In this document: positions 1-38,668 of the stretch, in pieces
Numbering within the stretch: the stretch's first letter is position 1
Layout of the letters: every line of letters begins with the position of its first letter
Source: Hypanus sabinus
Lineage: Eukaryota
Direction of reading: 5' to 3'
DNA length: 64,000 nucleotides
Assembly: GCF_030144855.1 (NCBI RefSeq)
Contig: NC_082710.1
Span: 153,202,001 to 153,266,000 of the forward strand
The notes under the pieces: generated by a model
What the model was told of the DNA's origin: nothing
Seen by the model: the letters and a program-made list of their open reading frames with translations, nothing else
Databases searched by the model: none
Translations under genes and position numbers: made by a program

Positions 1-248
1 AACTCTGAAAGATTTAAAGGTGAGTTTCCCGACACAACCCCCGACCATCGCCGTCACATACCCTCGCCTCACCTGTCTGGCTTCCCGCGACAGAGCAGAG
101 AGAGAACGCGGTGACAAGGAGCGACACCGGTCCGGTCCAACTCTCCATTGCGACGACTCCTCGCATCGACTGAACCCTGATCGTTAGTCAGTGAAGTGCT
201 GAGGGTGGAGTTAGACTCACAGACGCGGATTGAGGTAAACAGGGTTAT

Positions 249-3700: not shown

Positions 3701-5219
3701 ATTCATGAGTCACACCTGGGGATAGTGAAATGTAAAGAAAGAGCAAGGGACATTCTCTATTGGCCAGGTATGTCAACTCAGATAGAGGACATTGTGTCTC
3801 AGTGTGCTGTCTGTATTGAAAATAAAAACAGCAATCCAAGAGAGCCTTTGTTTCCACTACCAGGAAGACCATGTGAGAAGCTTGGCATAGATCTCTTTCG
3901 CTACAATAGTGCAGAATATCTGCTTTGTGTGGACCGCTATTCAAAATATCCGAAAATCACCAAGTTAAGTGACACGTCCAGTCAAGGTGTCATTACCGCA
4001 ATGAAGTCGACATTTGCAAGACATGGTATTCCAGATATTGTCATCAGTTACAATGGTCCACAATATGCCACTGGTGAGTTTAGAGAGTTTTCAGGAAGCT
4101 GGGAATTTAAACATGTTACTTCCAGTACTGGGCACACTCAGTCTAATGGACAAGCAGAGAGAACTATACAAACTGTGAAGAACATGCTCAAGAAGGCACA
4201 AAGCAGCAACAATGACCCGTACATTGTTCTGCTTGAATACCGCAACACACCGATTGAAGGTGTGGGGTTCTCCTGCACAGCTGTTGATGGGACGTCGTCT
4301 GAAGTCCAAGCTGCCAACATCCCCAACTCTACTGACTCCTGAAAGTAATGCTCAAGTACATGGCAAGCTAAAGTACAAGCAAATAAAGCAAAAGAGCTAC
4401 TATGACAGACATACAAGAGATCTGCATATAGGTGAAAATGTCAGAATACAGAGAGGAGACACATGGCAGCCAGCTGTGGTTGTGAACAGGCATCAGCAAC
4501 CAAGATCCTTCATAGTTCGCACGCCGGATGGAAGAGTCTTCAGGAGGAACAGGAAGCATCTGCTGAAGACAGGTGAGAGGGTGTTTCCACGTACAGATAC
4601 ACAGGACATTTCCATGGATACAGACATGGAAACAAACGACACCAAGAGTGAGGGGCGTGACGAAACCCCACGACACAATGACGGTGAAAGTTCGGCACAG
4701 ACTGACCGAGGTGGAAATGCAGACACAGAGGTTACTTGAGAGACTGACTCTGAAGGACAAGCACAGTCACAGTTCTATCGCACAAGGTCTGGAAGACAAG
4801 TCAAACTTCCAGCTAGATAGAGACTAGATCTACCTACAGTCTCGCACAGTTTGAGACAAAATCACACATGATATAAGTTCCAAGGTGTGAAATAAAAGGT
4901 TTATTAGACTATGTTAGTAAAAGAAAATATACTGCTGTTAGTATTGTAAGATACAATGTAGAATACAGTATAAGAAGTTAAGATTTTTATTAGTTTATGT
5001 CATGGCTGTTGTAATGTTAGAAAGTCATACCTAGAGGCATTGGTTTGGTAATTCACAGTATTGTAAAAAAAACTTGAGAAGGGGGATGTAATGTATTATG
5101 TGAGTATTCGTAGGTCAGAGTGCGTATGACCTACTGTAATGCGGGTTTTGTAAAATGGAAGTCTGGTGAATAAACGTGTGTGTTTAATACTGCGGTGTCT
5201 GAGTCACATTAACGCTACA
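733..5219 (+). mobile_element. Gypsy LTR retrotransposon, near full length, degenerate
   Basis: LTRs 733-878 and 5087-5219 (TG...CA); PBS TGGTGTCAGAAG 879-890 (tRNA-Leu type); PPT gagaaggggga 5076-5086; gag with CxxC knuckles, protease LDTG, RT LPFG/IIDD, RNase H and integrase HxxxH/CxxC in PR-RT-RH-IN order; multiple stops and frameshifts. Confidence 0.96.
878..4800 (+). pseudogene. Gypsy gag-pol remnants (ORF fragments 878-1318, 1413-1988, 2380-2950, 3296-4739)
   Basis: NIAENWKVWLQQF (gag), CPAFGKKC, FKLDTG, GFWQI...RYRFLRLPFG, HESHLGIVKC, SNGQAERTIQTVK; the second integrase Asp reads Y (SYNGPQY). Confidence 0.93.
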
Positions 5220-5222
5220 ATC

Positions 5223-5722
5223 TACAGGTGCAGCCAGTAACTGAAAATACTTCTACAGAAATGGACTGTGAGCTCAGTGGAGAGTCAGCTGATCGCGGGG
5301 GGGAGTGGAGCCAAACCACTTCCTGTAGTGTTGCATCAAATCCGGCGAGAGGAGATTTCAGGAACCTCCCAATAGCCCGAGGGAAGCTGTTCAGCACAAA
5401 CCTTCTCCAGTCACTGGGTAAAACAAAACTTCTAGAGGATCTCGGCTGGCCAGGCGGCAGATGCAAAGGGAAAAGCAGCGTCAACACAAAGTGTCCACTG
5501 TCCATGTCCCTCCACAGCTGCGGCCAGACCCGCTGATTCATAGTCATACTTCATGAAACAGGACTGGATGGGGAATGATCACAGAATAGGGTTCTTCCGC
5601 CATTGGACAGGGAGTGGCCAGGTTCTCTGAGAGAGCCCCTCAATTATTGTAGTAGGGTTCCCCCACCCCAGGGTCTCAGAAGATTGTCAACAGTCTCCCA
5701 CACCATCACCGACCTTACTAAC
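5223..5722. repeat. Duplicated ~480 bp segment, copy 2
   Basis: Paralog of 249-732 with several CG>TG/CA changes; its last ~30 bp are the 5' end of a Penelope-like RT fragment. Confidence 0.93.
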
Positions 5723-7855
5723 TGATGCACCATCAATAACTCACACTGAGACGTAAGGCGAGATATCGGCTTTTATTGACTGGAAGAAGGAACCAGGAGT
5801 GAGTGTCCATCATACTATGTCCTGGAGACTGAGGCCGAGCGTCAGGCCTCAGATCGCCTTTATACAGGGGCCTGTGGGAGGAGCCACAGGAGCAGTCAGC
5901 AGGGGGCGTGTCCAGACAGGCACATAGTTCACCACACTAACTCTGGAGATCTCCCATCCACTGCCACCAACCTCATAGTTCCTGCACCCTATACAATCCG
6001 TAACTGCCCAAGATCCACAACCCTGCCTGTCCAGGTAGACCGATTGTTTCTGTTAGTTCCTGCTCCACTGAACGTATATCTACATACCTCTACTCAGTTT
6101 TATCCCCCCACCCGCCCCCGTTCAGTCCCGTCCCACCTACATCCTTGACAATTCACACCTTCTTGATCTTTTCAAAGATTTCAAGTTCACTGGACCTGAT
6201 CATATTTTCACTATGGGTGTCCAACTCTATACACCTCCATATCCCACCAGGACAGTCTCAAACCCCTCCATTTCTTTCTGGACACCATACCCCACCAGTT
6301 CCTCTCCATCACCTCTCTCCTCCACCTAGTGAAACTGTTCCTCACTCTCAATAACTTCTCCTCTGGCTCCTCCCTTCAAGTAAAAGGTTCATTATGAGGA
6401 CTTGTATGGCTCTCCGGTATGCCTGCATTCTTGTTGGCTATGTGGAATAGTCTATGTTCTAACCCTAAACAGGTTGGTGCTGTTTCCTACACCCATGTGG
6501 AACTTCTCAGCTTCATCAACTTTGCCTCCAGTTTGCACCTTCAGATTTACTTGGTCCACTTCTGACACCTCCCTCCAGTTTCTCGATCTCACTGACTCTA
6601 TCTCTGGAGACTGCTTAGCTATTGATGTCTTTTATAAACCCACTGACCCTCACATCTATCTGGACTGCACCTCTTCCCACCCTGTTACTTGAAAAATTGC
6701 CACCCCCTTCTTTCAAGTCCTCTTCCTCTGCTGCATCTGCTCTCAGGATGAAGTTTTTCATTCTAGAGCTAAAGAAATGTCCTCCTTCTTCAAAGAAAGG
6801 GGCTTCCCTTCCTCCACCATCAATGCTGCCTTCTGCTGCATCTCTTCTATTTCACACTCCTCTGCCCTCACCCCATCCTCCCACCACCCCAACCAAGGTT
6901 CCCCTTCTCCTCAGCTACCACCTCACCTGCCTCTGCGTTCAGCACAAAATTCTCCATAATCTGCCATCTCCAATAGGATCCAATGACCAAACACATTCTC
7001 CTTCCCCACCACCTCCCACCACACTTTCTGCAAAAATCGCTCCCAACATGACTCCCTTGTTCATATGTTCTTCCTCACTGATTTCCCTGTTGGCATTTAT
7101 CCTTGCAAGCAGAACAAGTGTTACAGTTGCCCCTACACCTCCTCCCTCACTACCATTCAGAGCCCCAAACAGTCCTTCCAAGTGAGACGACATTTCACTT
7201 ATGAGTCTGTTGGGGTTATCTACTGTATCCAGTGCTCCAGGTGTGTGGCCTCCTGTGTATTGGTGAGACCTGACATAGATTGGGAGACTGCTTCACAAGC
7301 CCTGACACTCTCTTCACCAGAAGAAGCAGAATCCTCCAGTAGCCACCCATTTTAATTCTACTTCTCATTCCCATTCTGACATGTCAAGCCATGGTCTCCT
7401 CTATTGCCGTGATGTATTCCGTCTGGGTAGCCTCCAACCTGATGGAATGAACATTGATTTTCCAACATTGATTTTCCAGCTTCTGGTAATGTCCCTCCTC
7501 CCCTCTACTTCACAACTCCCCATCCCCATTTCCCTTTCATATGTTATCACCTTATCTGCCCACCACCTCCCTCTGGTGCTCCTTCCCTTCACTTCCTTCC
7601 ATGGCCTCTTGTCTTCCCTTTTTTAGCCCTTTATCTCTTTCACCATTGGAGCCCCTAGCTCTTTACTTCACAGCTTCCTCTCTCCCAGTTTTATCTATCA
7701 CTTATGACCTTGTACTTACTTCTCTCTAGCCCCCACATTCTTACTGTGATGTCTTATCTCTTTTCTGATGAAGGGTCTCAATCTGAAACATAGACTGTTT
7801 TCTCTTTTCCAAAGATGTTACCTGACTTGCTGAGTTCCTCCAGCAATTTGTGTGC
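5694..7855 (+). mobile_element. Penelope-like element, 5'-truncated and degenerate (RT, GIY-YIG, 3' tail)
   Basis: SGDLPSTATNLIVP, PKIH..P..PGRPIVS-like RT motifs; FTYESVGVIYCIQCSRC (GIY-YIG region); tail ctgatgaagggtctc...gctgagttcctccagca; interrupted by the solo LTR 5723-5936. Confidence 0.88.
5723..5936 (-). mobile_element. Solo LTR (214 bp) inserted in a Penelope-like element
   Basis: TG...CA termini; perfect 5 bp TSD CTAAC (5718-5722 and 5937-5941); TATAAA (5859-5864) and AATAAA (5772-5777) on the minus strand. Confidence 0.92.
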
Positions 7856-10547: not shown

Positions 10548-10980
10548 AGATTTTGCACATACTAGAAATCAGAGCTGGAGGAACTCGGCAGGCCAGGCAG
10601 AATCTATGGAAATCAATAAACAGCTGATGTTTCAGGCTGACACCCTTCTTCAGAACTGGGAAGGAAGGGGGGAAGATACTGAAATAAAGGTGGGGAAGGA
10701 GGACTTGCTAGGAGGCGGTAGGTGAATTCAGTGGGTGGTAGAGGTAAAGGGCTGGAGAAGAAGGAATCTGAAAAGAGAAAAGAGTGGACCATGGGAGAAA
10801 GGGAAGGAAGGACACCAGGATGAGGTGATAAGCAGGTGAGGAGAAGAGAATAGAAGAAGAGGGAAGGGAAAGGGTAAAAAAGTACTGGGAGGAAAAATCG
10901 ATGTTCACGCCATCAGTTTGAAGGCTTCCTGGACTTAATATGAGATATGGCTTCTCCACACGAGAGTGGCCTCATTGAGG
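10548..10980 (-). mobile_element. Penelope-like element 3' tail; the element continues at 19558-19607 and about 20545-20760
   Basis: Reverse complement of the PLE tail seen at 7400-7855; the GIY-YIG-region sequence resumes after the Gypsy and CR1 insertions. Confidence 0.8.
10621..10658 (-). ncRNA. Hammerhead motif, partly degenerate
   Basis: CAGUU-CUGAAGA-AGGGUGUCAGCCU-GAA-ACAU-C-AGCUG: core and helix I kept (one G-U pair); helix III palindrome lost through CpG decay. Confidence 0.55.
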
Positions 10981-12777
10981 TGAAACCACTTTGTACTGGG
11001 CATCTCCGGAAATATACCCGCTAACCCCTTACTAACAGCCACTGGACTCTGTGGCAAGAAACTCACCTTTCTTGGGCTTTGTACGTCCAGAGTGTATACA
11101 ACTTTGGTCCCGCCAAATCTGTGAAGTTAGGATGTCTTGCCCTCCCATACCCTGGTTTGTGTGAATGCTGGGTGATTCATTGCACATGGCAATCAGCCAT
11201 CAGCAAGAATTAACAGATCATACTACAGACAATTATAAAGAAGTATATTTAAGAACGTTAACTTAAGCAACCGATTTTTAAAGGAAAGAAAGAAGAAAAT
11301 GAAGAAGGTGCATTATACTTAAACAGTCACACGCTGGAGCTCACATCTTCCAGAAGCCATTGGTGTTGATGTACACACTGTATCTTCCAAATTTCACTTG
11401 AAATCCATTTTGAATAAACAGGCTCCTCCACTGGAATATTTGTCCTTCCTCCTCAAAGCACCTTGTGCAACAGGGACAGCATCCTCAACCATCTTCCCAC
11501 CTTCTCCCAGTTCCCACCAATAAAGACCTCAACCCACACCAGTGACCCTCACAAAATCTCTCCACCCAGCGCTCTCTACAATCTTCTTTGAATTCCTCCA
11601 TTCTAATTGGCTGACACCACATCCCAAAGTTGAACCACAAAGCCCCTTATCTCAGATTAAACCCTAAAAGACTGAAAGCAGAACAGACTGCTCTTACAGA
11701 ACTGCTAAATGAAATACCTGCAGTGTAGCAATGAAAATCTTAACTAGAGCTTTATTCTACCACCAAAAAGTAGTCATGTCCTCATGACTTTGAAACTTAT
11801 CAACCCATCCTTAATAACAGTTTTCAAAGAAATTTCCTGATGTCAGGACCTCCAATCCATTTGTGAATGGTAGTAACATATCTCAATAGGGGGATAGAAG
11901 CAAAACTCTGTTACCCCGGTGAAACATAGGCCAACCTATCTGGGGGTTTCCTGACTCTTTGAGACCTCCTTATCCAATCTTCAACTCCTCAACTTTTATC
12001 CACCCCTTGTGACCCTTCCTGTCTTCTAAAGGGTACATCTCACTTATATCTTCCTGCTCCATGACCAAATTTCCTCACCTCCTGCTGGTGCTAACTGGCA
12101 AGACTTTTCTCAAAAAAGGAGTGTCCTCGGTCTCTCCCAAAGTGTGGCAAGTATTCCTGGAGTAACCAACATCAGCCTCGTCAATAGAAAAGATATCTTT
12201 GAACCCAAAATTTTCTCAATTAAACACCTTTTCCATTCCTCAGACATTCCGACAAATCTGGGGGGTTTAGACTGGGTGCAACACATAGCTCCTCGTTTCT
12301 GCTCAACGTCCTGCTTAGGAGAAACTTGCACCTTCTCAGAAGCAGCTCTAAACAGAATGTGATTGGACAATGTTTTCAAAAAGTTCTCTCCATTTCTCTC
12401 CTTGCATGCTCCCAGGAGCCTTCTTATAATGCAGTATTTGTTCTCACAAAAATGGAAGCTCTGCCCTTTTTCAACTGGCTCCAGGCAGACCAACACTGGT
12501 GTGTCAATAGTTACTCAGTTACTCCAACATCTGCTTCTGAAAACTCCAGCTTCAATGACAAGTAACCATCGTATGGATACTCATCAGCACCAGGCCCCCG
12601 AATCTCAAGAGCACTGAATGGCGTCAATGGTAAATGAGTCAAATACCAGTTGTGAAAGGATCTATAAAACAAAGTAACTTGAGAACCTGTGTCAAGTATG
12701 GCTCTGGCATAAGCACCTTCAATCCATATGGTTACAGCAGAATTTGGCCCCTAAACCTTCAGGAATAGTGTTTGGTA

Positions 12778-19611: not shown

Positions 19612-20545
19612 CCATAGATCCATAGAACACATTAGCACAGAAATACAGGCCATTGGGCCCTTCTGGTCTGTGCCAAAACTTTATTCTGTTAGTCCCATTG
19701 ACCTGCACCCAGTCCATAGCCCTCCAGACCTCTCCCATCCATGTACCTATCCAATTTATTCTTAAAACTTAAGAGTGAGCCTGCATTTACCATGTCAGAT
19801 GGCAGCTCATTCCACACTCCCACCACTTTCTGAGTGAAGAAGTTCCCCCTAATGTTCCCCCTAAATCTTTCCCCTTTCACCCTAAAACATGTCCTCTCAT
19901 ATTTATCTCTCTTAATCTAAGTGGAAAGAGCCTACTCACATTTACTCTGTCTATACCCCTCATAATTTTGTAAACCTCTATCAAATCCCCCCTCATTCTT
20001 CTATGCTCCAAGGAATAAAGTCCTAACCTGTTCAATCTTTCCCTGTAACTCAACTCCTGAAGACCTGGCAACATCCTAGTAAATCTTCTCTGCACGCTTT
20101 CAATCTTACTGATATCCTTCCTATAGTTAAGTGACCAGAACTGCACACAATACTCCAAATTTGGCCTCACCAATATCTTATACAACCTCACCATAACATC
20201 CCAACTCCTATACTCAATACTTTGATTTATGAATGCCAAGATGCCAAAAAGCCTTCTTTACAACCATGTGCATCTGTGACGCCACTTTCAGGGTATTATT
20301 TATCTGAACTCCTAGATCCCTTTGTTCCTCTGCACTCCTCAGTGTCCTACCACTTAATGAGTATGTCCTACCTTGATTTGTCCTTCCAAAATGCAACACC
20401 TCACACTTTTCTGTATTAAATTCCATCTGCCATCTTCTGGCCCATTTTTCCAGTTGGCCCAGATCCCTCTGCAAGCTTTGAAAGCCTTCCTCGCTGTCTC
20501 CAATCTTAGTGTCATCAGCAAACTTGCTGATCCAATTTACCACAT
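19612..20545 (-). mobile_element. CR1 LINE, 5'-truncated
   Basis: SKFADDTKIG, WQMEFNTEKCEVLHFG, LVRPNLEYCVQFWS, RGDLIEVYKIMRG; (CTATGG)n-type tail near 19612-19625. Confidence 0.93.
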
Positions 20546-21529
20546 TCTGCTTTTGGTGGATAGAGTGGAGATGCGCGACAAAGCAGTCCCTCAGCTTATG
20601 TCAGATCACACCGATATAGAGGAGGCCACGTCGAGAGAACCTAATACAATGGAATACCCAAACAGATTCACAGGTAAAATGTTGCCTTACCTGGAAGGAC
20701 TGCTTGGATGGTCATGGGGAGGTAGAAGAGGACAAGTGAAAGTCTATCTCTGTTAAGGTGGTGGGAAGATGGGGTGAGTGTGGATGACCAAAAAGAGAGC
20801 AAAACATAGTGAGGTAATGTTCATGGGCTGATTCAAGGTCCATTCAGAAATATGATGGCAGAGGGGAACAAACTGTTCCTAAAATGTGTGTGCTTGTCTT
20901 AAACCTCCTCCATGATGGTAGCAATGAGAAGAGAGCATGTTCCTCTCCTGTCACGCATCCTCACCTGGATCCACCTATCGCTTGCCAGCTGTTGCTGCAC
21001 CACTTCTTCCCACCTCTTTAAACTGATTATCATCTCTGTATCTTTCAATAAAGATGAAGGATCTCTGCCCTAAATATTGACTGTTCGTTTTCCCCCACAA
21101 ATGCTGCCGGACTGCTAAGTTCCTCCAGCATTGTTTCTTTCTGCTTACCTCATCTCTTTGATTCTGTTCGTGCTGTTTCCTGTTCTCAGGTGAAATCCCA
21201 GCAATAGCTAGAATGTGGGTAAACCTGTTAGACTAGTGGGGAAGTACTTGAAAAGCAATTTTAATTTCAGGGGATAATGGCTAAAAACACACATACAGTG
21301 TTAACTAAGGAACTCAGTATGTCGGGCAGCATTTAGGGAAGGAAGTGGTATGTCAGGCAGCATTTATGGAAGGAAGTGGGCAGTCAAAATTTCTGGTCAA
21401 GACACTTTTCTTCCTCTTTCCTTCTCTATCTGCCTATATTCCTCCTTACTAGCACACACTATTGTCTGCCAGCTCTTGCTCCACCCTCTGCCACCAGCTA
21501 CAGAATTAGAACTGTTTAATGTCATTACC

Positions 21530-22565
21530 TTATATGTTGAGAAATGGGCTTTCCCTTCCTCCATCATTGATGCTAATCTCACCCACATCTCTAACATTTC
21601 CCAGGCATCAGCACTCCCCCCATCTCCTACTGCCAAAACACAGGTAGAGTTCCTCTTGTCCTCAATTACCACCCATGAGCCTTCATATTCGACACATCAT
21701 ATCTCTGCAACTTCTGCCATCTTCAATGTGACCCTGCTACCAAATACACTTTACCTTACCCCTCTCCACACTCTGGAGGGACTTCTCTCTCCATCTTCCT
21801 TTGTCCATTCATCCTTCCCCACTAATCTCCTTCTTGGCACTTATCCTGTAAGTGGCCGAAGTTTCTATTCTTGGCCACTCACCTCCTCCCTCAACTCCAT
21901 TCAGGGCCCCAGACAATCCTTCCAAGTGAGGCGACACTTCACTTGTGAATCTATTGGGGTGACATACTGTATCTGGTGTATGTAGTGTGGCACCCTCTAC
22001 ATTGGTGAGCCCCAATGCAGATTGTGTGTCCTCCTTATGAAGCAGGTCCATCAGCAAAACACAGAATTTCCAAGTAGCCAACAATTTCAATTCCTATCCC
22101 TATTCCTGTTCTAATGTTGGTCCACGGCCCCCTTTTCTGCCTCTTCATCAAGGTAGCCTCCAATCTGATAGCATAAACATCAACTTCTCCAACTGCCTAT
22201 AATTGTTTTCTCTCTCCGTTCCCTTTTCCTCATTTCCCCAATCTGGTCACTTTTTCTCCTCACCTGCCTATCATCCTCCTTTCCTTTCTCCCATGACCTA
22301 CTCTTTTCTATCAGATTCCTCCTTCCCAGCCCTTCACAGTTTCTGCTCATCACCCCCCCCCCAGCTTCTTACTGTACCCCTACCCCACCCACCTGGAATA
22401 CCACCTTCTAGCTGGTCCTCCTCCCCTTCCCCCCTCCTTCTTATTATGGTTTCGTCCTCCATCCTTTTCAGTCCTGATGAAGGCTTTTGGCCGAAACGTC
22501 GACTGCTTATTCATTTCCATACCTGCTGTCTGACCTTCTGAGTTCCTCCAGCAGTTTTTGTGAAA
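21530..22565 (+). mobile_element. Penelope-like element 3' part (RT C-terminus, GIY-YIG, tail with hammerhead)
   Basis: FQVRRHFTCESIGVTYCIW...LYIGE; tail ending ctgagttcctccagcag. Confidence 0.87.
22469..22505 (+). ncRNA. Minimal type I hammerhead ribozyme motif (intact core) in a PLE tail
   Basis: CAGUC-CUGAUGA-AGGCUUUUGGCC-GAA-ACGU-C-GACUG: helix I CAGUC/GACUG, core CUGANGA and GAAA, helix II GGC/GCC, loopless palindromic helix III ACGU, predicted cleavage after GUC (22500). There is one extra A before helix II. Confidence 0.8.
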
Positions 22566-22934
22566 TTTATTGTTTTGTGGCTAAGACCTAAAAATTGCTG
22601 AATGTTACAAAATATATAAATAGAGCAAATGAGGTAGTATCCATGGATTCATGTAATATTCATTAATCTTAATACAAAGGTGAAGAAGCTGTTCCTGCAT
22701 CACAGAGTGTGAGTCTTGGGCCTCCTGACATATTGGCATTGGAGCAGCCATTGCTGGAATGGACACTGTCAGAGAGTTAAAGAGCGAATGGGAATGAAAG
22801 TGCCAAAACAGATAGTGGAGAGGTTTAGGAGACAGATGTTGCTAAGACCTCAGACAAAGTCAGGAATCAAAAGATTGAACATGGTGCAACTAACGTCCTG
22901 AACTGCATATATTCAATGCAAGAAGTATATTCCT

Positions 22935-24265: not shown

Positions 24266-25015
24266 ACAAGTACAAACGAGAAAATTGGCAAATGCTGGAA
24301 TTCCAAGCAACACACACCAAACGCTGGACGAACTCAACAGCCTTGACAGCATCTATGGAAAAAAGTACAGTCAACATTTTAAGCCTTTGGCAGGACTGGA
24401 GAAAAAAAAGATGAGGAATAGAATTAAAAGGTGGGGGAGGGGAGAGAGAAACACAAAGTGATAGATGAAATTGGGAGGGGGAGGGATGAAGTAAAGAGCT
24501 GGGATGTTGATTGGTGGAAGAGATACAGAGCTGGAGAAGGGGGAGTCCGATAGGAGAGAACAGAGGCCATGCAAGAAAGAAAAGGGGAGAGAAGCACCAG
24601 AGGGAGGTGATGGGCAGGGAAAGAGATAAGGTGAGAGAGGGAAAAGGGTATGGTGAATGGTGAAGAAGGGGGTCATTACCGGAAGTTCAGGAAATCGATG
24701 TTCATGCCATCAGGTTGAAGGCTACCCAGACAGAGTATAAGATTCTGATCCTGCAACCTGAGTGTGGCCTTTTCATGACAGTAGACGAGGCCATGGATGA
24801 GCGAATCAGAATGGGAAGTGGAATGAAAATGGGTGGACACTGGGAGATAGCGCTTCCTCTGGCAGACAGAGCACAGGTGCTACACGAAACAGTCTTCTAA
24901 CTTACGTTGGGTCTCACCAATATACAGGAGGCTGCAGCGGGAGAACTGGACACAGTATATGACCCCAACAGACTCATAAGCAAAATATCACCTCACCTGG
25001 AAGGACTGTTTGGGG

Positions 25016-26706: not shown

Positions 26707-29700
26707 CGATGTGCTTGGTGATGGTGGGGGGGTGGAATGATGAGCCTGGTGGTGGTGCGGTGTGGAATGATGTACTTGGTGATGGTGGGGGGGTGGAATG
26801 ATGAGTGGTAATGGTGGGGGGGTGGAATGATGAGCTTGTTGATGGTGGGGGGGGGGTGGAATGATGAGCTTGTTGATGGTGGGGGGGGGTGGAATGATGA
26901 GCTTGGTGGTAGTGGGGGGTGGAATGACGTACTTGGTGATGGTGGGGGGTGGAATGATGAGTGGTGATGGTGGAGGGGGTGGAATGATGAGCTTGTTGAT
27001 GGTGGGGGAGGGTGGAATGATGAGCCTGGTGGTGGGGGGGGGTGGAATGATGAGTTTGGTAGTGGTGGGGGGTGGAATAATGAGCTTGGTGGGGGGTGGA
27101 ATGATGAGTTTGGTGGTGGGGGGGTGGAATGATGAGTTTGGTGGTGGGGGGTGGAATGATGAGCTTGGTGGGGGGGTGGAATGATGAGCTTGGTGGGGGG
27201 GTGGAATGATGAGTTTGGTAGTGGTGGGGGGGATGGAATGATGAGTTTGGTGGGGGGGGTGGAATGATGAGCTTGGTGGGGGGGTGGAATGATGAGTTTG
27301 GTAGTGGGGGGGTGGAATGATGAGCTTGGTGGGGGGGTGGAATGATGAGTTTGGTAGTGGTGGGGGGGTGGAATGATGAGCTTGGTGGGGGGGTGGAATG
27401 ATGAGCTTGGTGGGGGGGATGGAATGATGAGTTTGGTGGTGGGGGGGTGGAATGATGAGCTTGGTGGGGGGTGGAATGATGAGTTTGGTAGTGGTGGGGG
27501 GGATGGAATGATGAGTTTGGTGGTGGGGGTGGAATGATGAGCTTGGTGGGGGGGTGGAATGATGAGTTTGGTAGTGGGGGGGTGGAATGATGAGCTTGGT
27601 GGGGGGGTGGAATGATGAGTTTGGTAGTGGTGGGGGGTGGAATGATGAGCTTGGTGGGGGGGTGGAATGATGAGCTTGGTGGGGGGGTGGAATGATGAGT
27701 TTGGTAGTGGTGGGGGGGATGGAATGATGAGTTTGGTGGTGGGGGTGGAATGATGAGCTTGGTGGGGGGGTGGAATGATGAGTTTGGTAGTGGGGGGGTG
27801 GAATGATGAGCTTGGTGGGGGGGATGGAATGATGAGTTTGGTGGTGGGGGGGTGGAATGATGAGCTTGGTGATGGTGGGGGGGTGGAATGATGAGTGGTA
27901 ATGGTGGGGGGGTGGAATGATGAGCTTGTTGATGGTGGGGGGGGGTGGAATGATGAGCTTGTTGATGGTGGGGGGGGGTGGAATGATGAGCTTGGTGGTA
28001 GTGGGGGGTGGAATGACGTACTTGGTGATGGTGGGGGGTGGAATGATGAGTGGTGATGGTGGAGGGGGTGGAATGATGAGCTTGTTGATGGTGGGGGAGG
28101 GTGGAATGATGAGCCTGGTGGTGGGGGGGGGGTGGAATGATGAGTTTGGTAGTGGTGGGGGGTGGAATAATGAGCTTGGTGGGGGGTGGAATGATGAGTT
28201 TGGTGGTGGGGGGGTGGAATGATGAGTTTGGTGGTGGGGGGTGGAATGATGAGCTTGGTGGGGGGGTGGAATGATGAGCTTGGTGGGGGGGTGGAATGAT
28301 GAGTTTGGTAGTGGTGGGGGGGATGGAATGATGAGTTTGGTGGGGGGGAGGTGGAATGATGAGCTTGGTGGGGGGGTGGAATGATGAGTTTGGTAGTGGG
28401 GGGGTGGAATGATGAGCTTGGTGGGGGGGTGGAATGATGAGTTTGGTAGTGGTGGGGGGGTGGAATGATGAGCTTGGTGGGGGGGTGGAATGATGAGCTT
28501 GGTGGGGGGGATGGAATGATGAGTTTGGTGGTGGGGGGGTGGAATGATGAGCTTGGTGGGGGGTGGAATGATGAGTTTGGTAGTGGTGGGGGGGATGGAA
28601 TGATGAGTTTGGTGGTGGGGGTGGAATGATGAGCTTGGTGGGGGGGTGGAATGATGAGTTTGGTAGTGGGGGGGTGGAATGATGAGCTTGGTGGGGGGGT
28701 GGAATGATGAGTTTGGTAGTGGTGGGGGGTGGAATGATGAGCTTGGTGGGGGGGTGGAATGATGAGCTTGGTGGGGGGGTGGAATGATGAGTTTGGTAGT
28801 GGTGGGGGGGATGGAATGATGAGTTTGGTGGTGGGGGTGGAATGATGAGCTTGGTGGGGGGGTGGAATGATGAGTTTGGTAGTGGGGGGGTGGAATGATG
28901 AGCTTGGTGGGGGGGATGGAATGATGAGTTTGGTGGTGGGGGGGTGGAATGATGAGCTTGGTGGGGGGTGGAATGATGAGTTTGGTAGTGGTGGGGGGGG
29001 TGGAATGATGAGCTTGGTGGGGGGGATGGAATGATGAGTTTGGTGGTGGGGGGGTGGAATGATGAGCTTGGTGGGGGGGATGGAATGATGAGTTTGGTAG
29101 TGGTGGGGGGGTGGTATGATGAGCTTGGTGGGGGGGTGGAATGATGAGTTTGGTAGTGGTGGGGGGGATGGAGTGATGAGTTTGGTGGTGGGGGTGGAAT
29201 GATGAGCTTGGTTGGGGGGGTGGAATGATGTTTGGTAGTGGGGGGTGGAATGATGAGCTTGGTGGGGGGGTGGAATGATGAGTTTGGTAGTGGGGGGGTG
29301 GAATGATGAGCTTGGTGGGGGGGGGTGGAATGATGAGTTTGGTAGTGGTGGGGGGTGGAATGATGAGCTTGGTGGGGGGGTGGAATGATGAGCTTGGTGG
29401 GGGGGTGGAATGATGAGTTTGGTAGTGGTGGGGGGGATGGAATGATGAGTTTGGTGGTGGGGGTGGAATGATGAGCTTGGTGGGGGGGTGGAATGATGAG
29501 TTTGGTAGTGGGGGGGTGGAATGATGAGCTTGGTGGGGGGTATGGAATGATGAGTTTGGTGGTGGGGGGTGGAATGATGAGCTTGGTGGGGGGTGGAATG
29601 ATGAGTTTGGTAGTGGTGGGGGGTGGAATGATGAGCTTGGTGGGGGGGATGGAATGATGAGTTTGGTGGTGGGGGGGTGGAATGATGAGCTTGGTGGGGG

Positions 29701-32700
29701 GGATGGAATGATGAGTTTGGTAGTGGTGGGGGGGTGGTATGATGAGCTTGGTGGGGGGGTGGAATGATGAGTTTGGTAGTGGTGGGGGGGATGGAGTGAT
29801 GAGTTTGGTGGTGGGGGTGGAATGATGAGCTTGGTGGGGGGGTGGAATGATGAGTTTGGTAGTGGGGGGGTGGAATGATGAGCTTGGTGGGGGGGTGGAA
29901 TGATGAGTTTGGTAGTGGTGGGGGGGGGTGGAATGATGAGCTTGGTGGGGGGTGGAATAATGAGCTTGGTGGGGGGTGGAATGATGAGTTTGGTGGTGGG
30001 GGGGTGGAATGATGAGTTTGGTGGTGGGGGGTGGAATGATGAGCTTGGTGGGGGGGTGGAATGATGAGCTTGGTGGGGGGGTGGAATGATGAGTTTGGTA
30101 GTGGTGGGGGGGATGGAATGATGAGTTTGGTGGGGGGGGTGGAATGATGAGCTTGGTGGGGGGGTGGAATGATGAGTTTGGTAGTGGGGGGGTGGAATGA
30201 TGAGCTTGGTGGGGGGGTGGAATGATGAGTTTGGTAGTGGTGGGGGGGTGGAATGATGAGCTTGGTGGGGGGGTGGAATGATGAGCTTGGTGGGGGGGAT
30301 GGAATGATGAGTTTGGTGGTGGGGGGGTGGAATGATGAGCTTGGTGGGGGGTGGAATGATGAGTTTGGTAGTGGTGGGGGGGATGGAATGATGAGTTTGG
30401 TGGTGGGGGTGGAATGATGAGCTTGGTGGGGGGGTGGAATGATGAGTTTGGTAGTGGGGGGGTGGAATGATGAGCTTGGTGGGGGGGTGGAATGATGAGT
30501 TTGGTAGTGGTGGGGGGTGGAATGATGAGCTTGGTGGGGGGGTGGAATGATGAGCTTGGTGGGGGGGTGGAATGATGAGTTTGGTAGTGGTGGGGGGGAT
30601 GGAATGATGAGTTTGGTGGTGGGGGTGGAATGATGAGCTTGGTGGGGGGGTGGAATGATGAGTTTGGTAGTGGGGGGGTGGAATGATGAGCTTGGTGGGG
30701 GGGATGGAATGATGAGTTTGGTGGTGGGGGGGTGGAATGATGAGCTTGGTGATGGTGGGGGGGTGGAATGATGAGTGGTAATGGTGGGGGGGTGGAATGA
30801 TGAGCTTGTTGATGGTGGGGGGGGGGTGGAATGATGAGCTTGTTGATGGTGGGGGGGGTGGAATGATGAGCTTGGTGGTAGTGGGGGGTGGAATGACGTA
30901 CTTGGTGATGGTGGGGGGTGGAATGATGAGTGGTGATGGTGGAGGGGGTGGAATGATGAGCTTGTTGATGGTGGGGGAGGGTGGAATGATGAGCCTGGTG
31001 GTGGGGGGGGGTGGAATGATGAGTTTGGTAGTGGTGGGGGGTGGAATAATGAGCTTGGTGGGGGGTGGAATGATGAGTTTGGTGGTGGGGGGGTGGAATG
31101 ATGAGTTTGGTGGTGGGGGGTGGAATGATGAGCTTGGTGGGGGGGTGGAATGATGAGCTTGGTGGGGGGGTGGAATGATGAGTTTGGTAGTGGTGGGGGG
31201 GATGGAATGATGAGTTTGGTGGGGGGGAGGTGGAATGATGAGCTTGGTGGGGGGGTGGAATGATGAGTTTGGTAGTGGGGGGGTGGAATGATGAGCTTGG
31301 TGGGGGGGTGGAATGATGAGTTTGGTAGTGGTGGGGGGGTGGAATGATGAGCTTGGTGGGGGGGTGGAATGATGAGCTTGGTGGGGGGGATGGAATGATG
31401 AGTTTGGTGGTGGGGGGGTGGAATGATGAGCTTGGTGGGGGGTGGAATGATGAGTTTGGTAGTGGTGGGGGGGATGGAATGATGAGTTTGGTGGTGGGGG
31501 TGGAATGATGAGCTTGGTGGGGGGGTGGAATGATGAGTTTGGTAGTGGGGGGGTGGAATGATGAGCTTGGTGGGGGGGTGGAATGATGAGTTTGGTAGTG
31601 GTGGGGGGTGGAATGATGAGCTTGGTGGGGGGGTGGAATGATGAGCTTGGTGGGGGGGTGGAATGATGAGTTTGGTAGTGGTGGGGGGGATGGAATGATG
31701 AGTTTGGTGGTGGGGGTGGAATGATGAGCTTGGTGGGGGGGTGGAATGATGAGTTTGGTAGTGGGGGGGTGGAATGATGAGCTTGGTGGGGGGGATGGAA
31801 TGATGAGTTTGGTGGTGGGGGGGTGGAATGATGAGCTTGGTGGGGGGTGGAATGATGAGTTTGGTAGTGGTGGGGGGGGTGGAATGATGAGCTTGGTGGG
31901 GGGGATGGAATGATGAGTTTGGTGGTGGGGGGGTGGAATGATGAGCTTGGTGGGGGGGATGGAATGATGAGTTTGGTAGTGGTGGGGGGGTGGTATGATG
32001 AGCTTGGTGGGGGGGTGGAATGATGAGTTTGGTAGTGGTGGGGGGGATGGAGTGATGAGTTTGGTGGTGGGGGTGGAATGATGAGCTTGGTTGGGGGGGT
32101 GGAATGATGTTTGGTAGTGGGGGGTGGAATGATGAGCTTGGTGGGGGGGTGGAATGATGAGTTTGGTAGTGGGGGGGTGGAATGATGAGCTTGGTGGGGG
32201 GGGGTGGAATGATGAGTTTGGTAGTGGTGGGGGGTGGAATGATGAGCTTGGTGGGGGGGTGGAATGATGAGCTTGGTGGGGGGGTGGAATGATGAGTTTG
32301 GTAGTGGTGGGGGGGATGGAATGATGAGTTTGGTGGTGGGGGTGGAATGATGAGCTTGGTGGGGGGGTGGAATGATGAGTTTGGTAGTGGGGGGGTGGAA
32401 TGATGAGCTTGGTGGGGGGTATGGAATGATGAGTTTGGTGGTGGGGGGTGGAATGATGAGCTTGGTGGGGGGTGGAATGATGAGTTTGGTAGTGGTGGGG
32501 GGTGGAATGATGAGCTTGGTGGGGGGGATGGAATGATGAGTTTGGTGGTGGGGGGGTGGAATGATGAGCTTGGTGGGGGGGATGGAATGATGAGTTTGGT
32601 AGTGGTGGGGGGGTGGTATGATGAGCTTGGTGGGGGGGTGGAATGATGAGTTTGGTAGTGGTGGGGGGGATGGAGTGATGAGTTTGGTGGTGGGGGTGGA

Positions 32701-35700
32701 ATGATGAGCTTGGTGGGGGGGTGGAATGATGAGTTTGGTAGTGGGGGGGTGGAATGATGAGCTTGGTGGGGGGGTGGAATGATGAGTTTGGTAGTGGTGG
32801 GGGGGGGTGGAATGATGAGCTTGATGGGGGGTGGAATAATGAGTTTGGTGGGGGGGTGGAATGATGAGAATGGTAGTGGTGGGGGTGGAATGATCTTGGT
32901 AGTGGTGGGGGGGGGATGGAATGATGAGTTTGGTAGTGGTGGGGGGTGGAATGATGAGCTTGGTGGGGGGGTGGAATGATGAGTTTGGTAGTGGTGGGGG
33001 GGATGGAATGATGAGTTTGGTGGTGGGGTTGGAATGATGAGCTTGGTGGGGGGGGTGGAATGATGAGTTTGGTAGTGGGGGGGGTGGAATGATGAGCTTG
33101 GAGAGGGGTGGAATGATGAGTTTGGTAGTGGTGGGGGGGTGGAATGATGAGCTTGGTGGGGGGGTGGAATGATGAGTTTGGTAGTGGTGGGGGGGATGGA
33201 ATGATGAGTTTGGAGGAGGGGTGGAATGATGAGTTTGGTAGTGGTGGGGGGGTGGAATGATGAGCTTGGTGGGGGGGGTGGAATGATGAGTTTGGTAGTG
33301 GTGGGGGGTGGAATGATGAGCTTGGTGGGGGGGTGGAATGATGAGCTTGGTGGGGGGGATGGAATGATGAGTTTGGTGGTGGGGGGGTGGAATGATGAGC
33401 TTGGTGGGGGGTGGAATGATGAGTTTGGTAGTGGTGGGGGGGATGGAATGATGAGTTTGGTGGTGGGGTTGGAATGATGAGCTTGGTGGGGGGGTGGAAT
33501 GATGAGTTTGGTAGTGGGGGGGTGGAATGATGAGCTTGGAGGGGGGTGGAATGATGAGTTTGGTAGTGGTGGGGGGGTGGAATGATGAGCTTGGTGGGGG
33601 GGTGGAATGATGAGTTTGGTAGTGGTGGGGGGTGGAATGATGAGCTTGGTGGGGGGGTGGAATGATGAGCTTGGTGGGGGGGATGGAATGATGAGTTTGG
33701 TGGTGGTGGGGTGGAATGATGAGCTTGGTGGGGGGGTGGAATGATGAGTTTGGTAGTGGTGGGGGGTGGAATGATGAGCTTGGTGGGGGGGGTGGAATGA
33801 TGAGTTTGGTAGTGGTGGGGGGTGGAATGATGAGCTTGGTGGGGGGTGGAATGATGAGTTTGGTAGTGGTGGGGGGGATGGAATGATGTGTTTGGAGGGG
33901 GGGTTGAATGATGAGTTTGGTAGTGGTGGGGGGGTGGAATGATGAGCTTGGTGGGGGGGTGGAATGATGAGTTTGGTAGTGGTGGGGGGGTGGAATGATG
34001 AGCTTGATGGGGGGGTGGAATGATGAGCTTGGTGGGGGGGATGGAATGATGAGTTTGGTGGTGGGGGGGTGGAATGATGAGCTTGGTGGGGGGGTGGAAT
34101 GATGAGTTTGGTAGTGGTGGGGGGTGGAATGATGAGCTTGGTGGGGGGGGTGGAATGATGAGTTTGGTAGTGGTGGGGGGTGGAATGATGAGCTTAGTGG
34201 GGGTGGAATGATGAGTTTGGTAGTGGTGGGGGGGATGGAATGATGAGTTTGGTGGTGGGGTTGGAATGATGAGCTTGGTGGGGGGGGTGGAATGATGAGT
34301 TTGGTAGTGGGGGGGGTGGAATGATGAGCTTGGAGGGGGGTGGAATGATGAGTTTGGTAGTGGTGGGGGGGTGGAATGATGAGCTTGGTGGGGGGGTGGA
34401 ATGATGAGTTTGGTAGTGGTGGGGGGGATGGAATGATGAGTTTGGAGGAGGGGTGGAATGATGAGTTTGGTAGTGGTGGGGGGTGGAATGATGAGCTTAG
34501 TGGGGGTGGAATGATGAGTTTGGTAGTGGTGGGGGGGATGGAATGATGAGTTTGGAGGGGGGTGGAATGATGAGTTTGGTAGTGGTGGGGGGGTGGAATG
34601 ATGAGCTTGGTGGGGGGGTGGAATGATGAGTTTGGTAGTGGTGGGGGGGTGGAATGATGAGCTTGGTGGGGGGGTGGAATGATGAGCTTGGTGGGGGGGA
34701 TGGAATGATGAGTTTGGTGGTGGGGGGGTGGAATGATGAGCTTGGTGGGGGGTGGAATGATGAGTTTGGTAGTGGTGGGGGGGTGGAATGATGAGCTTGG
34801 TGGGGGGGTGGAATGATGAGTTTGGTAGTGGTGGGGGGGTGGAATGATGAGCTTGGTGGGGGGGTGGAATGATGAGTTTGGTAGTGGTGGGGGGGATGGA
34901 ATGATGAGTTTGGTGGTGGGGTTGGAATGATGAGCTTGGTGGGGGGGGTGGAATGATGAGTTTGGTAGTGGGGGGGGTGGAATGATGAGCTTGGAGGGGG
35001 GTGGAATGATGAGTTTGGTAGTGGTGGGGGGGTGGAATGATGAGCTTGGTGGGGGGGTGGAATGATGAGTTTGGTAGTGCTGGGGGGGTGGAATGATGAG
35101 CTTAGTGGGGGTGGAATGATGAGTTTGGTAGTGGTGGGGGGGATGGAATGATGAGTTTGGAGGGGGGTGGAATGATGAGTTTGGTAGTGGTGGGGGGGTG
35201 GAATGATGAGCTTGGTGGGGGGGTGGAATGATGAGTTTGGTAGTGGTGGGGGGGTGGAATGATGAGCTTGGTGGGGGGGTGGAATGATGAGCTTGGTGGG
35301 GGGGATGGAATGATGAGTTTGGTGGTGGGGGGGTGGAATGATGAGCTTGGTGGGGGGTGGAATGATGAGTTTGGTAGTGGTGGGGGGGTGGAATGATGAG
35401 CTTGGTGGGGGGGTGGAATGATGAGTTTGGTAGTGGTGGGGGGGTGGAATGATGAGCTTGGTGGGGGGGGTGGAATGATGAGCTTGGTGGGGGGGATGGA
35501 ATGATGAGTTTGGTGGTGGGGGGGTGGAATGATGAGCTTGGTGGGGGGTGGAATGATGAGTTTGGTAGTGGTGGGGGGGATGGAATGATGAGTTTGGTGG
35601 TGGGGTTGGAATGATGAGCTTGGTGGGGGGGGTGGAATGATGAGTTTGGTAGTGGGGGGGTGGAATGATGAGCTTGGAGGGGGGTGGAATGATGAGTTTG

Positions 35701-38668
35701 GTAGTGGTGGGGGGGTGGAATGATGAGCTTGGTGGGGGGGTGGAATGATGAGTTTGGTAGTGGTGGGGGGTGGAATGATGAGCTTAGTGGGGGTGGAATG
35801 ATGAGTTTGGTAGTGGTGGGGGGGGTGGAATGATGAGTTTGGTAGTGGTGGGGGGGATGGAATGATGAGTTTGGTGGTGGGGTTGGAATGATGAGCTTGG
35901 TGGGGGGGGTGGAATGATGAGTTTGGTAGTGGGGGGGGTGGAATGATGAGCTTGGAGGGGGGTGGAATGATGAGTTTGGTAGTGGTGGGGGGGTGGAATG
36001 ATGAGCTTGGTGGGGGGGTGGAATGATGAGTTTGGTAGTGGTGGGGGGGATGGAATGATGAGTTTGGAGGAGGGGTGGAATGATGAGTTTGGTAGTGGTG
36101 GGGGGTGGAATGATGAGCTTAGTGGGGGTGGAATGATGAGTTTGGTAGTGGTGGGGGGGATGGAATGATGAGTTTGGAGGGGGGTGGAATGATGAGTTTG
36201 GTAGTGGTGGGGGGTGGAATGATGAGCTTGGTGGGGGGGTGGAATGATGAGTTTGGTAGTGGTGGGGGGGTGGAATGATGAGCTTGGTGGGGGGGTGGAA
36301 TGATGAGCTTGGTGGGGGGGATGGAATGATGAGTTTGGTGGTGGGGGGGTGGAATGATGAGCTTGGTGGGGGGTGGAATGATGAGTTTGGTAGTGGTGGG
36401 GGGGTGGAATGATGAGCTTGGTGGGGGGGTGGAATGATGAGTTTGGTAGTGGTGGGGGGGTGGAATGATGAGCTTGGTGGGGGGGTGGAATGATGAGCTT
36501 GGTGGGGGGGATGGAATGATGAGTTTGGTGGTGGGGGGGTGGAATGATGAGCTTGGTGGGGGGTGGAATGATGAGTTTGGTAGTGGTGGGGGGGTGGAAT
36601 GATGAGCTTGGTGGGGGGGGTTTAATGATGAGTTTGGTAGTGGTGGGGGTGGAATGATGAGCTTGGTGGGGGGGGTGGAATGATGAGTTTGGTGATGGTG
36701 GGGGGTGGAATGATGAGCCTGGTGGTGGTGGGGGGGTGGAATGATGAGTTTGGTGGTGGGGGGGTGGAATGATGAGGGTGGGGGGGTGGAATGATGAGTT
36801 TGGTAGTGGTGGGGGGTGGAATGATGAGCTTGGTGGGGGGGGAAATGATGAGTTTGGTGATGGTGGGGGGTGGAATGACGTATTTTGTGATGGGGGGGCG
36901 GAATGACTTACTTGGTGATGGGGGGTGTAATGATGAGCTTGGTAGTGGTGGGGGGTGGAATGATGAGTTTGGTGGTGGTGGGGGGTGGAATGATGAGTTT
37001 GGTGGTGGTGGGGGGGTGGAATGATGAGTTTGGTGGTGGGGGGGTGGAATGATGAGCCTGGTGGTGGGGGGGTGGAATGATGTTTGGTGGTGGGGGGGGG
37101 GGGTGGAATGATGAGTTTGGTGGTGGGGGTGGAATGATGAGTTTGGTAGTGGGGGGGGTGGAATGATGAGCTTGGTGGGGGGCTGGAATGATGAGCCTGG
37201 TGGGGGGGATGGAATGATGAGTTTGGTGGTGGGGGGGGTGGAATGATGAGCTTGGTGGCGGGGTGGAATGATGAGTTTGGTGGGGGTGGAATGATGAGTT
37301 TGGTGGTGGGGGTTGGAATGATGAGCTTGGTGGGGGGGGTGGAATGATGAGCTTGGTGGGGGGGATGGAATGATGAGTTTGGTGGTGGGGGTGGAATGAT
37401 GAGCTTGGTGGGGGGGTGAAATGATGAGTTTGGTAGTGGTGGGGGGTGCAATGATGAGCTTGGTGGGGGGGTGGAATGATGAGTTTGGTAGTGGTGGGGG
37501 GTGGAATGATGAGCTTGGTGGGGGGGGTGGAATGATGAGTTTGGTGATGGTGGGGGGTGGAATGACGTACTTGGTGATGGGGGGTGGAATGATGAGCCTG
37601 GTGGTGGTGGGGGGGGGGGGTTGGAATGATGAGCCTGGTGGTGGTGGGTGGGGTGGAATGATGAGTTTGGTGGTGGGGGGGTGGAATGACGTACTTGGTG
37701 ATGGGGGGTGGAATGATGAGTTTGGTGGTGGTGGGGGGTGTGGAATGATGAGCCTGGTGGTGGTGGGGGGGTGGAATGATGAGTTTGGTGGTGGGGGGGG
37801 TGGAATGATGAGTTTGGTCGTGTGGGGTGTGGAATGATGAGCCTGGTGGTGGTGGGGGGGTGGAATGATGAGTTTGGTGGTGGGGGGGTGGAATGATGTT
37901 TGGTGGTGGTGGGGGGTGGAATGATGAGTTTGGTGGTGGTGGGGGGGTGGAATGATGAATTTGGTGGTGGGGGGGGTGGAATGATGAGCCTGGTGGTGGT
38001 GGGGGGGGGGGTGGAATGATGAGCCTTGTGGTGGTGGGGGGGTGGAATGATGAGCCTGGTGGTGGTGGGGGGGTAGAATGATGTACTTGGTGATGGTGGG
38101 GGTGTGGAATGATGAGTGGTGGTGGTGGGGGGGGTAGAATGATGTGCTTGGTGATGGTGGGGGTGTGGAATGAGCTTGGTGGTGTTGGGGGTGGAATGAT
38201 GTACTTGGTGATGGTGGGGGGTGGAATGATGAGTGGTGATGGTGGGGGGGTAGAATGATGTGCTTGGTGGGGGTGTGGAATGATGAGTGGTGATGGTGGG
38301 GGGGTAGAATGAGCTTGGTGGTGTTGGGGGTGGAATGATGAGTGGTGATGGTGGGGGGGGGTAGAATGATGAGCTTGTTGATGGTGGGGGGGGTAGAATG
38401 ATGAGCTTGGTCATGGTGGGGGGGTGGAATGATTGGTGATGGTGGGGGGGTGGAATGATGAGTGGTGATGGTGGGGGGGTAGAATGATGTGCTTGGTGGG
38501 GGTGTGGAATGATGAGTGGTGATGGTGGGGGGGTAGAATGAGCTTGGTGTTGTTGGGGGTGGAATGATGTACTCGCTGATGGTGGTGGTGAAATGATGAG
38601 CCTAGTGGTGGGCGGTGGAATGATGTTTTTGGTGGTGGGGGGTGGAATGAAGTGCTTGGTGGTGGGGT
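26707..38668. repeat. ~12 kb G-rich minisatellite, unit ~25-31 bp: GGAATGATGAG(C/T)TTGGT(AGT)(GGT)G5-9T
   Basis: Continuous tandem array; diverged units at both ends, homogeneous core; rare-variant markers show higher-order repeats of about 623, 1090 and 2880 bp. Confidence 0.99.

Follow-up and report, generated by a model that had tools for sequence, protein, structure and literature searches.

A sequence-intact minimal hammerhead motif in the 3' region of a dead Penelope-like element of Hypanus sabinus

Is a hammerhead motif that has kept all of its essential letters within an otherwise ruined transposable element still a ribozyme at work, or a remnant that mutation has so far passed by? 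This question is raised by a stretch of 64,000 nucleotides (nt) of the Hypanus sabinus genome (RefSeq assembly GCF_030144855.1, contig NC_082710.1, positions 153,202,001 to 153,266,000 of the forward strand; the whole stretch is referred to below as the window). An initial annotation, made from the letters alone, placed an intact minimal hammerhead ribozyme (min-HHR) at positions 22469-22505, in the tail of a Penelope-like element (PLE). The analysis presented here leads us to conclude that the locus holds a sequence-intact PLE min-HHR within the 3' untranslated region (UTR) of an old, dead insertion, and that it is most likely an inert relic spared by chance.

Positions 22469-22505 of the plus strand form a complete minimal type I hammerhead of 37 nt. 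Its letters match exactly those transcribed in the initial annotation, with an intact core, a GUC triplet, a 5-bp helix I and ACGU in place of helix III, and the same segment was found by a structural descriptor (see below). The motif is composed of the following parts:

22469-22473 (+), 5' strand of helix I, CAGUC (positions 2.5-2.1), forming 5 bp with 22501-22505; found by the descriptor
22474-22480 (+), catalytic core C3-A9, CUGAUGA; kept in the majority consensus of the seven window copies
22481 (+), unpaired A between A9 and G10.1; present in nine of the 11 aligned copies
22482-22492 (+), helix II hairpin, GGCU / UUU loop / GGCC, in which 22482-22485 pair with 22489-22492
22493-22495 (+), core G12 A13 A14 (GAA); from the sequence
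22496-22499 (+), A15.1-C15.2-G16.2-U16.1, the loopless palindrome ACGU that replaces helix III; from the sequence
22500 (+), C17, predicted cleavage site in the GUC triplet, with scission predicted between 22500 and 22501
22501-22505 (+), 3' strand of helix I, GACUG (positions 1.1-1.5); from the sequence and the descriptor

Helix II comprises four base pairs (G-C, G-C, C-G and U.G), of which the closing pair is G10.1-C11.1 (G22482-C22492). The palindrome ACGU could pair only with that of a second copy, because a monomer would be left with a loop of only 2 nt. The features that define a min-HHR at the sequence level were all found in this segment, namely (i) the core, (ii) A15.1-U16.1, (iii) an N-U-H triplet, (iv) an open-ended helix I of 4-5 bp, (v) G10.1-C11.1 with one unpaired nucleotide on its 5' side, (vi) a palindromic 15.2-16.2 and (vii) a 3' location in the sense strand of a PLE. 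It therefore carries all three published signatures of PLE min-HHRs, i.e. a nucleotide left unpaired between A9 and G10.1, the pair G10.1-C11.1 and a palindrome at 15.2-16.2 (PMC4209133). It had been feared that the extra A preceding helix II might not be tolerated, but this worry can be set aside, since an unpaired A at this place is a published trait of the class (PMC4209133). As far as its letters are concerned, the focal motif is confirmed as an intact minimal type I hammerhead, for which cleavage is predicted.

The descriptor combined a core part (CUGAUGA, 0-1 unpaired nt, GAAA and H17) with a helix part (helix II of >=3 bp, a palindromic helix III and helix I of >=4 bp). Applied to both strands of the window, it returned one match, the focal site, versus none in 500 dinucleotide-preserving shuffles. 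The 37-nt motif is also the single match in the window when up to three mismatches are allowed.

Comparison by BLASTN and by a profile of the tail sequence revealed that the motif is part of a dispersed repeat. The nhmmer tail profile produced 12 matches in 64 kb, seven of which reach the hammerhead, which bears out the earlier impression that PLE tails are very abundant here. A covariance model built from an 11-sequence alignment (see below) retrieved only these seven copies at E<1e-5. The sister motifs of the focal copy are as follows:

10621-10658 (-), motif B, dead: CpG decay has turned ACGU into ACAU, core CUGAAGA (an allowed variant), helix I in the compensated form CAGUU/AGCUG
63252-63289 (-), motif C, dead: core CUGCUGA, both CpGs lost
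7760-7797 (+), motif D, dead; lies in a near full-length decayed PLE (~5540-7854)
42305-42341 (+), motif E, dead; belongs to the subfamily of the focal copy, with which it shares a 1-nt deletion and UUUGGCC in helix II
24368-24398 (-), motif F, dead: 7 nt deleted from helix II, core gone
21046-21083 (+), motif G, dead; lies 1.4 kb upstream of the focal motif and is the closest copy on its strand

When the seven window copies are compared, the majority letters still spell CUGAUGA, GAAAC and CAGUC/GACUG; the misgiving that the family consensus might be devoid of the core was thus unfounded. The claim that the focal copy alone retains both CpGs of ACGTCG held up as well: they are lost in motifs B-G and also in the partial copies H, I and K, which reach that position. 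None of the six sister motifs keeps the palindrome, and each keeps at most one of the three CpGs of the motif. At these three sites the sister copies mostly read TG, CA or TA, with a few transversions, and several of them additionally carry substitutions or deletions in the core. Since the three CpGs coincide with essential positions, it is methylation-driven deamination that accounts for most of the decay in the sister copies. Motif G is no dimer partner for the focal motif, because its helix III reads AUAU and its core is lost; nor did the descriptor and the covariance model detect an intact partner motif elsewhere in the 64-kb window.

The host of the focal motif was analysed on the basis of its coding remnant, its 3' UTR and its tail:

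21411-22202 (+), remnant of the C-terminal third of a PLE open reading frame (ORF), with linker, Cys motif and GIY-YIG region; three-frame translation, BLASTP
22203-22468 (+), C/T-rich 3' UTR from the ORF stop to the ribozyme; homology to the corresponding UTR in copies B, D and F
22506-22562 (+), conserved PLE tail of ~57 nt on the 3' side of the ribozyme; alignment of 6-12 copies, nhmmer E 1e-29

The ORF remnant (~21411-22199) is decayed and 5'-truncated, contains several stops and a frameshift, and ends at the TAA codon 22200-22202. The hammerhead begins 266 nt 3' of this stop codon, on the same strand, and similarity to the PLE family ceases near 22562. An open stretch of 211 aa within the remnant aligned with residues 349-503 of P0002 (BLASTP, E 6e-6), a protein of 590 aa with RVT_1, HTH_animal and GIY-YIG domains, and displayed 40% identity (BLASTP, E 8e-24) to a PLE-derived protein of H. 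sabinus itself (P0131), in an alignment that covers the Cys motif and reaches into the beginning of GIY-YIG. Pfam searches with the ORF fragments of the focal copy and of copy D gave only spurious, sub-threshold Fer4 matches; because these were uninformative, the identification as a PLE is based on BLASTP and HMMER comparisons with full-length relatives.

The larger sister copy D adds to this picture: the pieces of reverse transcriptase (RT), linker and GIY-YIG that it preserves follow the same order as in P0002, in a colinear match that extends from the PKIH-type RT motif up to where GIY-YIG begins. The proteins most closely related to it come from rays and sharks and are annotated as "uncharacterized proteins"; one of them, a whale shark protein, combines RVT_1 with GIY-YIG. 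PLEs are recognised by a single ORF in which the RT precedes a GIY-YIG endonuclease at the C-terminus (PMC8557442, PMC4209133), and this arrangement was found at the level of the family, with P0002 and P0150 carrying RVT_1 together with GIY-YIG. The linker C-x4-C-x2-C, which precedes GIY-YIG in copy D and P0002, is associated with PLEs of the Neptune type (PMC8557442); the host may possibly be an endonuclease-containing (EN+) element of this type. The homology of the ORF, together with the same layout in copies from the whale shark and the zebra shark (see below), identifies the host as a PLE. The comparison supports a placement of the focal motif in the sense strand of the 3' UTR and tail of this element, as had been proposed in the initial annotation.

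The focal copy is a dead insertion that has lost its coding capacity. This is indicated by the stops and the frameshift in the ORF, by the ratio of observed to expected CpGs (CpG o/e) of 0.11 in the ORF part, and by the 5' truncation, where an inverted and itself 5'-truncated fragment of a PLE tail (21300-21410, minus strand) abuts the copy. Further upstream lies a dead tail in direct orientation (21015-21135). Copy D is preceded, at 5426-5538, by tail fragments of both orientations. The tails that flank the focal copy and copy D are too decayed for pseudo-long terminal repeats (pLTRs) to be told apart from independent insertions. We also considered that a younger unit, composed of hammerhead and tail, had been inserted onto an older copy. 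This scenario was not adopted: no duplicated tail was found, and UTR homology is continuous over 22148-22552. It is worth mentioning that the inverted fragment 21300-21410 starts inside helix II of its own hammerhead and contains a tandem duplication of 31 nt (21317-21379).

The layout observed in H. sabinus recurs in other elasmobranchs. In the whale shark (L006), a homologous motif occupies 11679-11715, beyond a PLE gene that terminates at 11410, which gives a spacing of ~270 nt between stop and motif; the order of stop codon, C/T-rich UTR of ~270 nt, hammerhead and ~60-nt tail is therefore the same. In the zebra shark, Stegostoma tigrinum (L005), the motif at 4520-4557 has an intact core, extra A, 4-bp helix II and ACGU-C, with a weak adjacent helix I. 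The zebra shark gene model translates through the 3' UTR and the hammerhead, so that motif and tail stand at its read-through 3' end. In L001-L004, PLE loci of invertebrate or unknown host, no simple CUGANGA...GAAA motif was present within the short 3' flanks, and exact-pattern scans of metagenome and viral contigs for the motif, or for the motif with its tail, gave no match.

Pairing was assessed in an alignment of 11 sequences (seven window copies, two from the zebra shark and two from the whale shark). Over helix I, helix II and the palindrome taken together, standard pairs make up 76.9% of the cells, versus 10-40% when the partner is slid by 1-3 columns; the respective values for the single helices are 70% (helix I) and 85% (helix II). 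Five pairs are changed on both sides. At the innermost pair of helix I (2.1-1.1), the focal copy and two more window copies have C-G, and copy B and four others have U-A; the third pair of helix II, C-G in the focal copy, is G-C in most others, a compensatory change. A13, A14 and A15.1 are invariant in all 11 copies and G12 is kept in eight of them, and the extra A is present in all four shark copies. At 15.2/16.2, CG is the most frequent state (5 of 11 copies, including all four shark copies), and where window copies deviate from it, they mostly show states expected of CpG decay. These counts are supportive of the structure rather than strong evidence for it, since the structure was taken from one of the aligned sequences and most of the copies are decayed.

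It should be added that several elasmobranch gene models correspond to PLE ORFs or to chimeras of host genes with PLEs: L005:3001-4569 (S. tigrinum), P0131 and P0149 (H. sabinus), P0152 (Mobula) and P0226 (Amblyraja). They bear names such as "divergent protein kinase domain 1C isoform X2" and "chitinase domain-containing protein 1". These PLE-containing models look like annotation artefacts.

The distribution of CpGs sets the motif apart from the remainder of its host. CpG o/e is ~1.2 in 22441-22510, versus values for the focal copy of 0.11 (ORF part) and 0.13 (UTR). For the window as a whole it amounts to 0.20, a depletion resembling that of vertebrate genomes. The three CpGs of the motif (22492/3, 22497/8 and 22500/1) overlap C11.1/G12, C15.2/G16.2 and C17/G1.1, respectively, and a fourth has survived at 22453, 16 nt upstream of the motif, so that four CpGs are gathered within ~50 nt (22453-22501). 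Relatives with open reading frames contain 3-4 CpGs per 100 nt in the homologous ORF region. Outside the motif, the focal copy has kept ~5 of an estimated ~35 ancestral CpGs (~14% survival, ~86% lost). The ~57-nt tail is ~11% diverged from the family consensus, as counted on the alignment.

The activity to be expected of such a motif depends on dimerisation. A double-hammerhead model was reportedly presented by Forster et al. 1988. In a live element, the motif would pair through its palindrome ACGU with a second copy, either a tandem neighbour or another transcript, to form a double hammerhead in which helices I and III would be intermolecular (as regards helix I, this is our own reading of the topology). 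Each core would then cut the partner strand after C17 and so generate ends with a 2',3'-cyclic phosphate and a 5'-OH; the PLE's own protein would probably assist, and the cut would serve to trim read-through or tandem transcripts. Cleavage of dimers through a palindromic helix III, which the initial annotation had taken as established, is backed by the literature: the double-hammerhead model with dimer-dependent cleavage was presented for PLE min-HHRs (PMC4209133), and a dimer model of hammerheads with a palindromic helix III is attributed to Lunse, Weinberg & Breaker (2017) where PMC6765202 cites them. The single motif of schistosomes is not cleaved, and dimeric constructs cleave weakly and mostly at non-physiological Mg2+ (PMC4209133).

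Against the conclusion that a genuine hammerhead has survived here as a chance relic, several results have to be set: (i) Rfam 15 yielded no hammerhead match, either in the whole window (gathering score) or in 22300-22700 (E<=10); (ii) as a monomer, the 37-mer has a rod-shaped minimum free energy (MFE) structure, with GAUG of the core paired to CGUC of the cleavage site (-11.9 kcal/mol, versus -9.7 kcal/mol for the fold with helices I and II); (iii) for the dimer, nearest-neighbour folding assigns -18.3 kcal/mol to the active double hammerhead versus -29.3 kcal/mol to the MFE structure; and (iv) with independent decay of the sites, survival of all three motif CpGs has a probability of only ~0.003 per copy, which strains an explanation by chance.

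The silence of Rfam would suit a chance look-alike unrelated to hammerhead ribozymes, as would the frequency of the bare pattern CTGATGA...GAAA, which occurs in the window about as often as expected by chance (3 found, 2.1 expected). However, the Rfam models Hammerhead_1, Hammerhead_3, HH9, HH10 and Hammerhead_II, which share with the focal motif the catalytic core and the logic of a three-way junction, fail to score it even at E<=10, presumably because they demand a real helix III, which min-HHRs do not have. This variant is in effect outside the library, and a match to Rfam, missing for the focal motif, is not among its defining features. A look-alike is, moreover, difficult to reconcile with the full descriptor (no hit in the 500 shuffles), with the identity of the motif as the consensus of a repeat family, with its position and orientation, which are those where PLEs carry hammerheads, with its recurrence in other elasmobranch PLEs, and with the compensatory changes in helices I and II. 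In our judgement, the evidence from the family and across species effectively refutes the look-alike, to which we assign next to no probability.

The predicted energies bear on a different alternative, according to which the focal copy is a working ribozyme, i.e. the region is transcribed and its RNA is cut after C22500, in trans-dimers formed with transcripts of intact copies from other parts of the genome, or aided by protein from a PLE that is still active. Several observations fit this: the motif has kept all 13 core positions together with A15.1-U16.1, GUC and both helices I and II; the family is abundant (12 tails in 64 kb), and identical partners may therefore exist elsewhere in the genome; elasmobranch genomes hold apparently intact PLE ORFs; and the hammerhead of PAc, the Poseidon element of Anolis carolinensis, cleaves only when its protein is added (PMC11167929). 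On the other side, the focal ribozyme has no partner motif in cis, its inactive hairpin is predicted to be more stable than the active fold, in vitro cleavage by PLE min-HHRs is poor even in dimers and absent with single motifs (PMC4209133), and no RNA-seq ends were found at the cut site of PAc (PMC11167929). The PAc hammerhead also proved dispensable for target-primed reverse transcription in vitro (PMC11167929). Nearest-neighbour models ignore the tertiary energy of the hammerhead core; read with this limit, the folding agrees with a reluctant ribozyme. Activity of the focal copy in trans is possible, and we consider a working ribozyme at this locus unlikely. The statement that this copy is the best candidate for an active ribozyme holds relative to its dead neighbours, but the motif is solitary, it has no intact partner in cis, and the element around it is dead.

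The low probability of joint CpG survival, together with the contrast in CpG o/e (~1.2 versus 0.11-0.13), would also be compatible with a motif held by selection, as an exapted host ribozyme, or shielded by local protection in a hypomethylated patch, from which the four surviving CpGs would result. Domesticated hammerheads in vertebrate genes (reviewed in PMC6155905) provide a precedent for exaptation. This explanation is nevertheless weakened by the way in which the copy came to attention: it was picked post hoc, for being intact, from seven in the window and from a family that probably comprises many thousands, and among tens of thousands of copies hundreds of such chance survivors are expected. 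Furthermore, neighbouring CpGs share their methylation state, so that their survival is not independent, and the divergence of the tail adjoining the motif (~11% from the consensus) also counts against selection or protection. We regard both forms of this alternative as quite improbable. The cluster of four CpGs can be explained by chance, given the copy number, and we therefore retain the view that the motif is a relic spared by chance and infer that it has no function at this locus.

Among known systems, the closest are the PLE min-HHRs described by Cervera & de la Pena in 2014 (PMC4209133). Like the focal motif, they are of type I, have a palindrome for helix III, an unpaired nucleotide and a G10.1-C11.1 pair, possess a short helix I (4-5 bp) and no loop-loop tertiary contacts, and lie in the sense strand of PLE terminal regions, in thousands of mostly solitary copies from truncated elements. 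The differences concern helix II, which has 4 bp in the focal motif versus 6-8 bp in the min-HHRs of schistosomes and Drosophila, and the host, an elasmobranch PLE family for which no published sequences were found in the min-HHR literature examined. PAc (PMC11167929) is likewise a vertebrate PLE whose hammerhead does without a stable helix III. In PAc, however, the motif lies in the upstream pLTR and overlaps the start of the ORF, whereas the focal motif follows the stop by 266 nt and is ~60 nt away from the 3' end of a truncated copy; the C-x4-C-x2-C linker of the focal element's family suggests that its clade, too, may differ from that of PAc.

A type I fold with a very short palindromic helix III is shared by the hammerheads of newt satellite 2, schistosome Sm-alpha and the non-LTR retrozymes of animals (PMC7229834; bioRxiv 10.64898/2026.07.22.740005). 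These double hammerheads are now thought to derive from PLE pLTRs. They differ from the focal motif in forming tandem arrays, in having contacts between the loops of helices I and II, and in giving rise to circular RNAs: the focal motif has no loop 1, and Tandem Repeats Finder (TRF) detected no tandem array at or near 22469-22505, i.e. nothing of the head-to-tail order that characterises retrozymes. In a preprint of 2026 in which one chondrichthyan was sampled, hammerhead retrozymes were found there together with PLEs (bioRxiv 10.64898/2026.07.22.740005).

The find is thus real but ordinary, one more copy of a known class of PLE hammerheads. The suggestion of a large uncatalogued ribozyme family stood in so far as the variant is outside Rfam, but not with respect to the literature, since the class was described in 2014 from fishes, the coelacanth (~4,000 motifs), Xenopus (~9,000) and reptiles (PMC4209133). 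Such motifs are known to litter the genomes of vertebrates other than mammals and birds, and a single copy matters little on its own. Of wider interest is that the class is here documented in elasmobranch PLEs with a clear anatomy (stop codon, UTR of ~270 nt, hammerhead, tail of ~60 nt), and that deamination emerges as the main killer of copies in a heavily methylated vertebrate genome, most of them being dead because three CpGs coincide with essential positions. As Rfam 15 is blind to the variant, automated annotation will miss a family that is probably very large; a curated covariance model for PLE min-HHRs would close this gap.

Other repeats in the window deserve a brief description. A repeat of ~460 bp is present at 249-711 and 5223-5677 (90% identity), the second instance being located just upstream of PLE copy D, and both instances contain fragments of PLE tails in both orientations (450-580 and 5415-5545), whose divergence keeps them from registering as clean inverted repeats. 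The repeat beside copy D would fit the published arrangement of an inverted, 5'-truncated copy next to the upstream pLTR (PMC8557442). Inside the same repeat, the covariance model gave weak matches at 257-289 (-) and 5231-5263 (-), with E values of 0.003 and 2.4, respectively. They show CUGAAGA and a hairpin resembling helix II, without GAAAC, and may represent a far-decayed hammerhead or chance.

A G-rich minisatellite of 12 kb (26846-38667; period ~25-28 nt, ~427 copies) has no hammerhead in its unit and abuts the 5' side of the minus-strand PLE copy F; it is responsible for the excess of G over C in the window. Read in reverse complement, its unit opens with GCTCATCA and then a run of C, which resembles a motif of the PLE 3' UTR (22338-22362 in the focal copy).

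At 19689-20543 (-), ORFs with C-terminal reverse transcriptase-like sequence, which we take to be typical of a LINE of the CR1/L2 type, adjoin a minus-strand PLE ORF fragment (20643-20705), and the region looks like a nest of retroelements. The beginning of the window (1-1500) is rich in CpGs, with 71 in total and 34 in the first 500 nt, compared with 0-10 per 500 nt over most of the window (11-19 in a few bins); a CpG island or a young repeat might account for this. Finally, an ORF of 348 aa at 3296-4342 (+) contains integrase-like sequence, which presumably resembles the integrase of an LTR retrotransposon.

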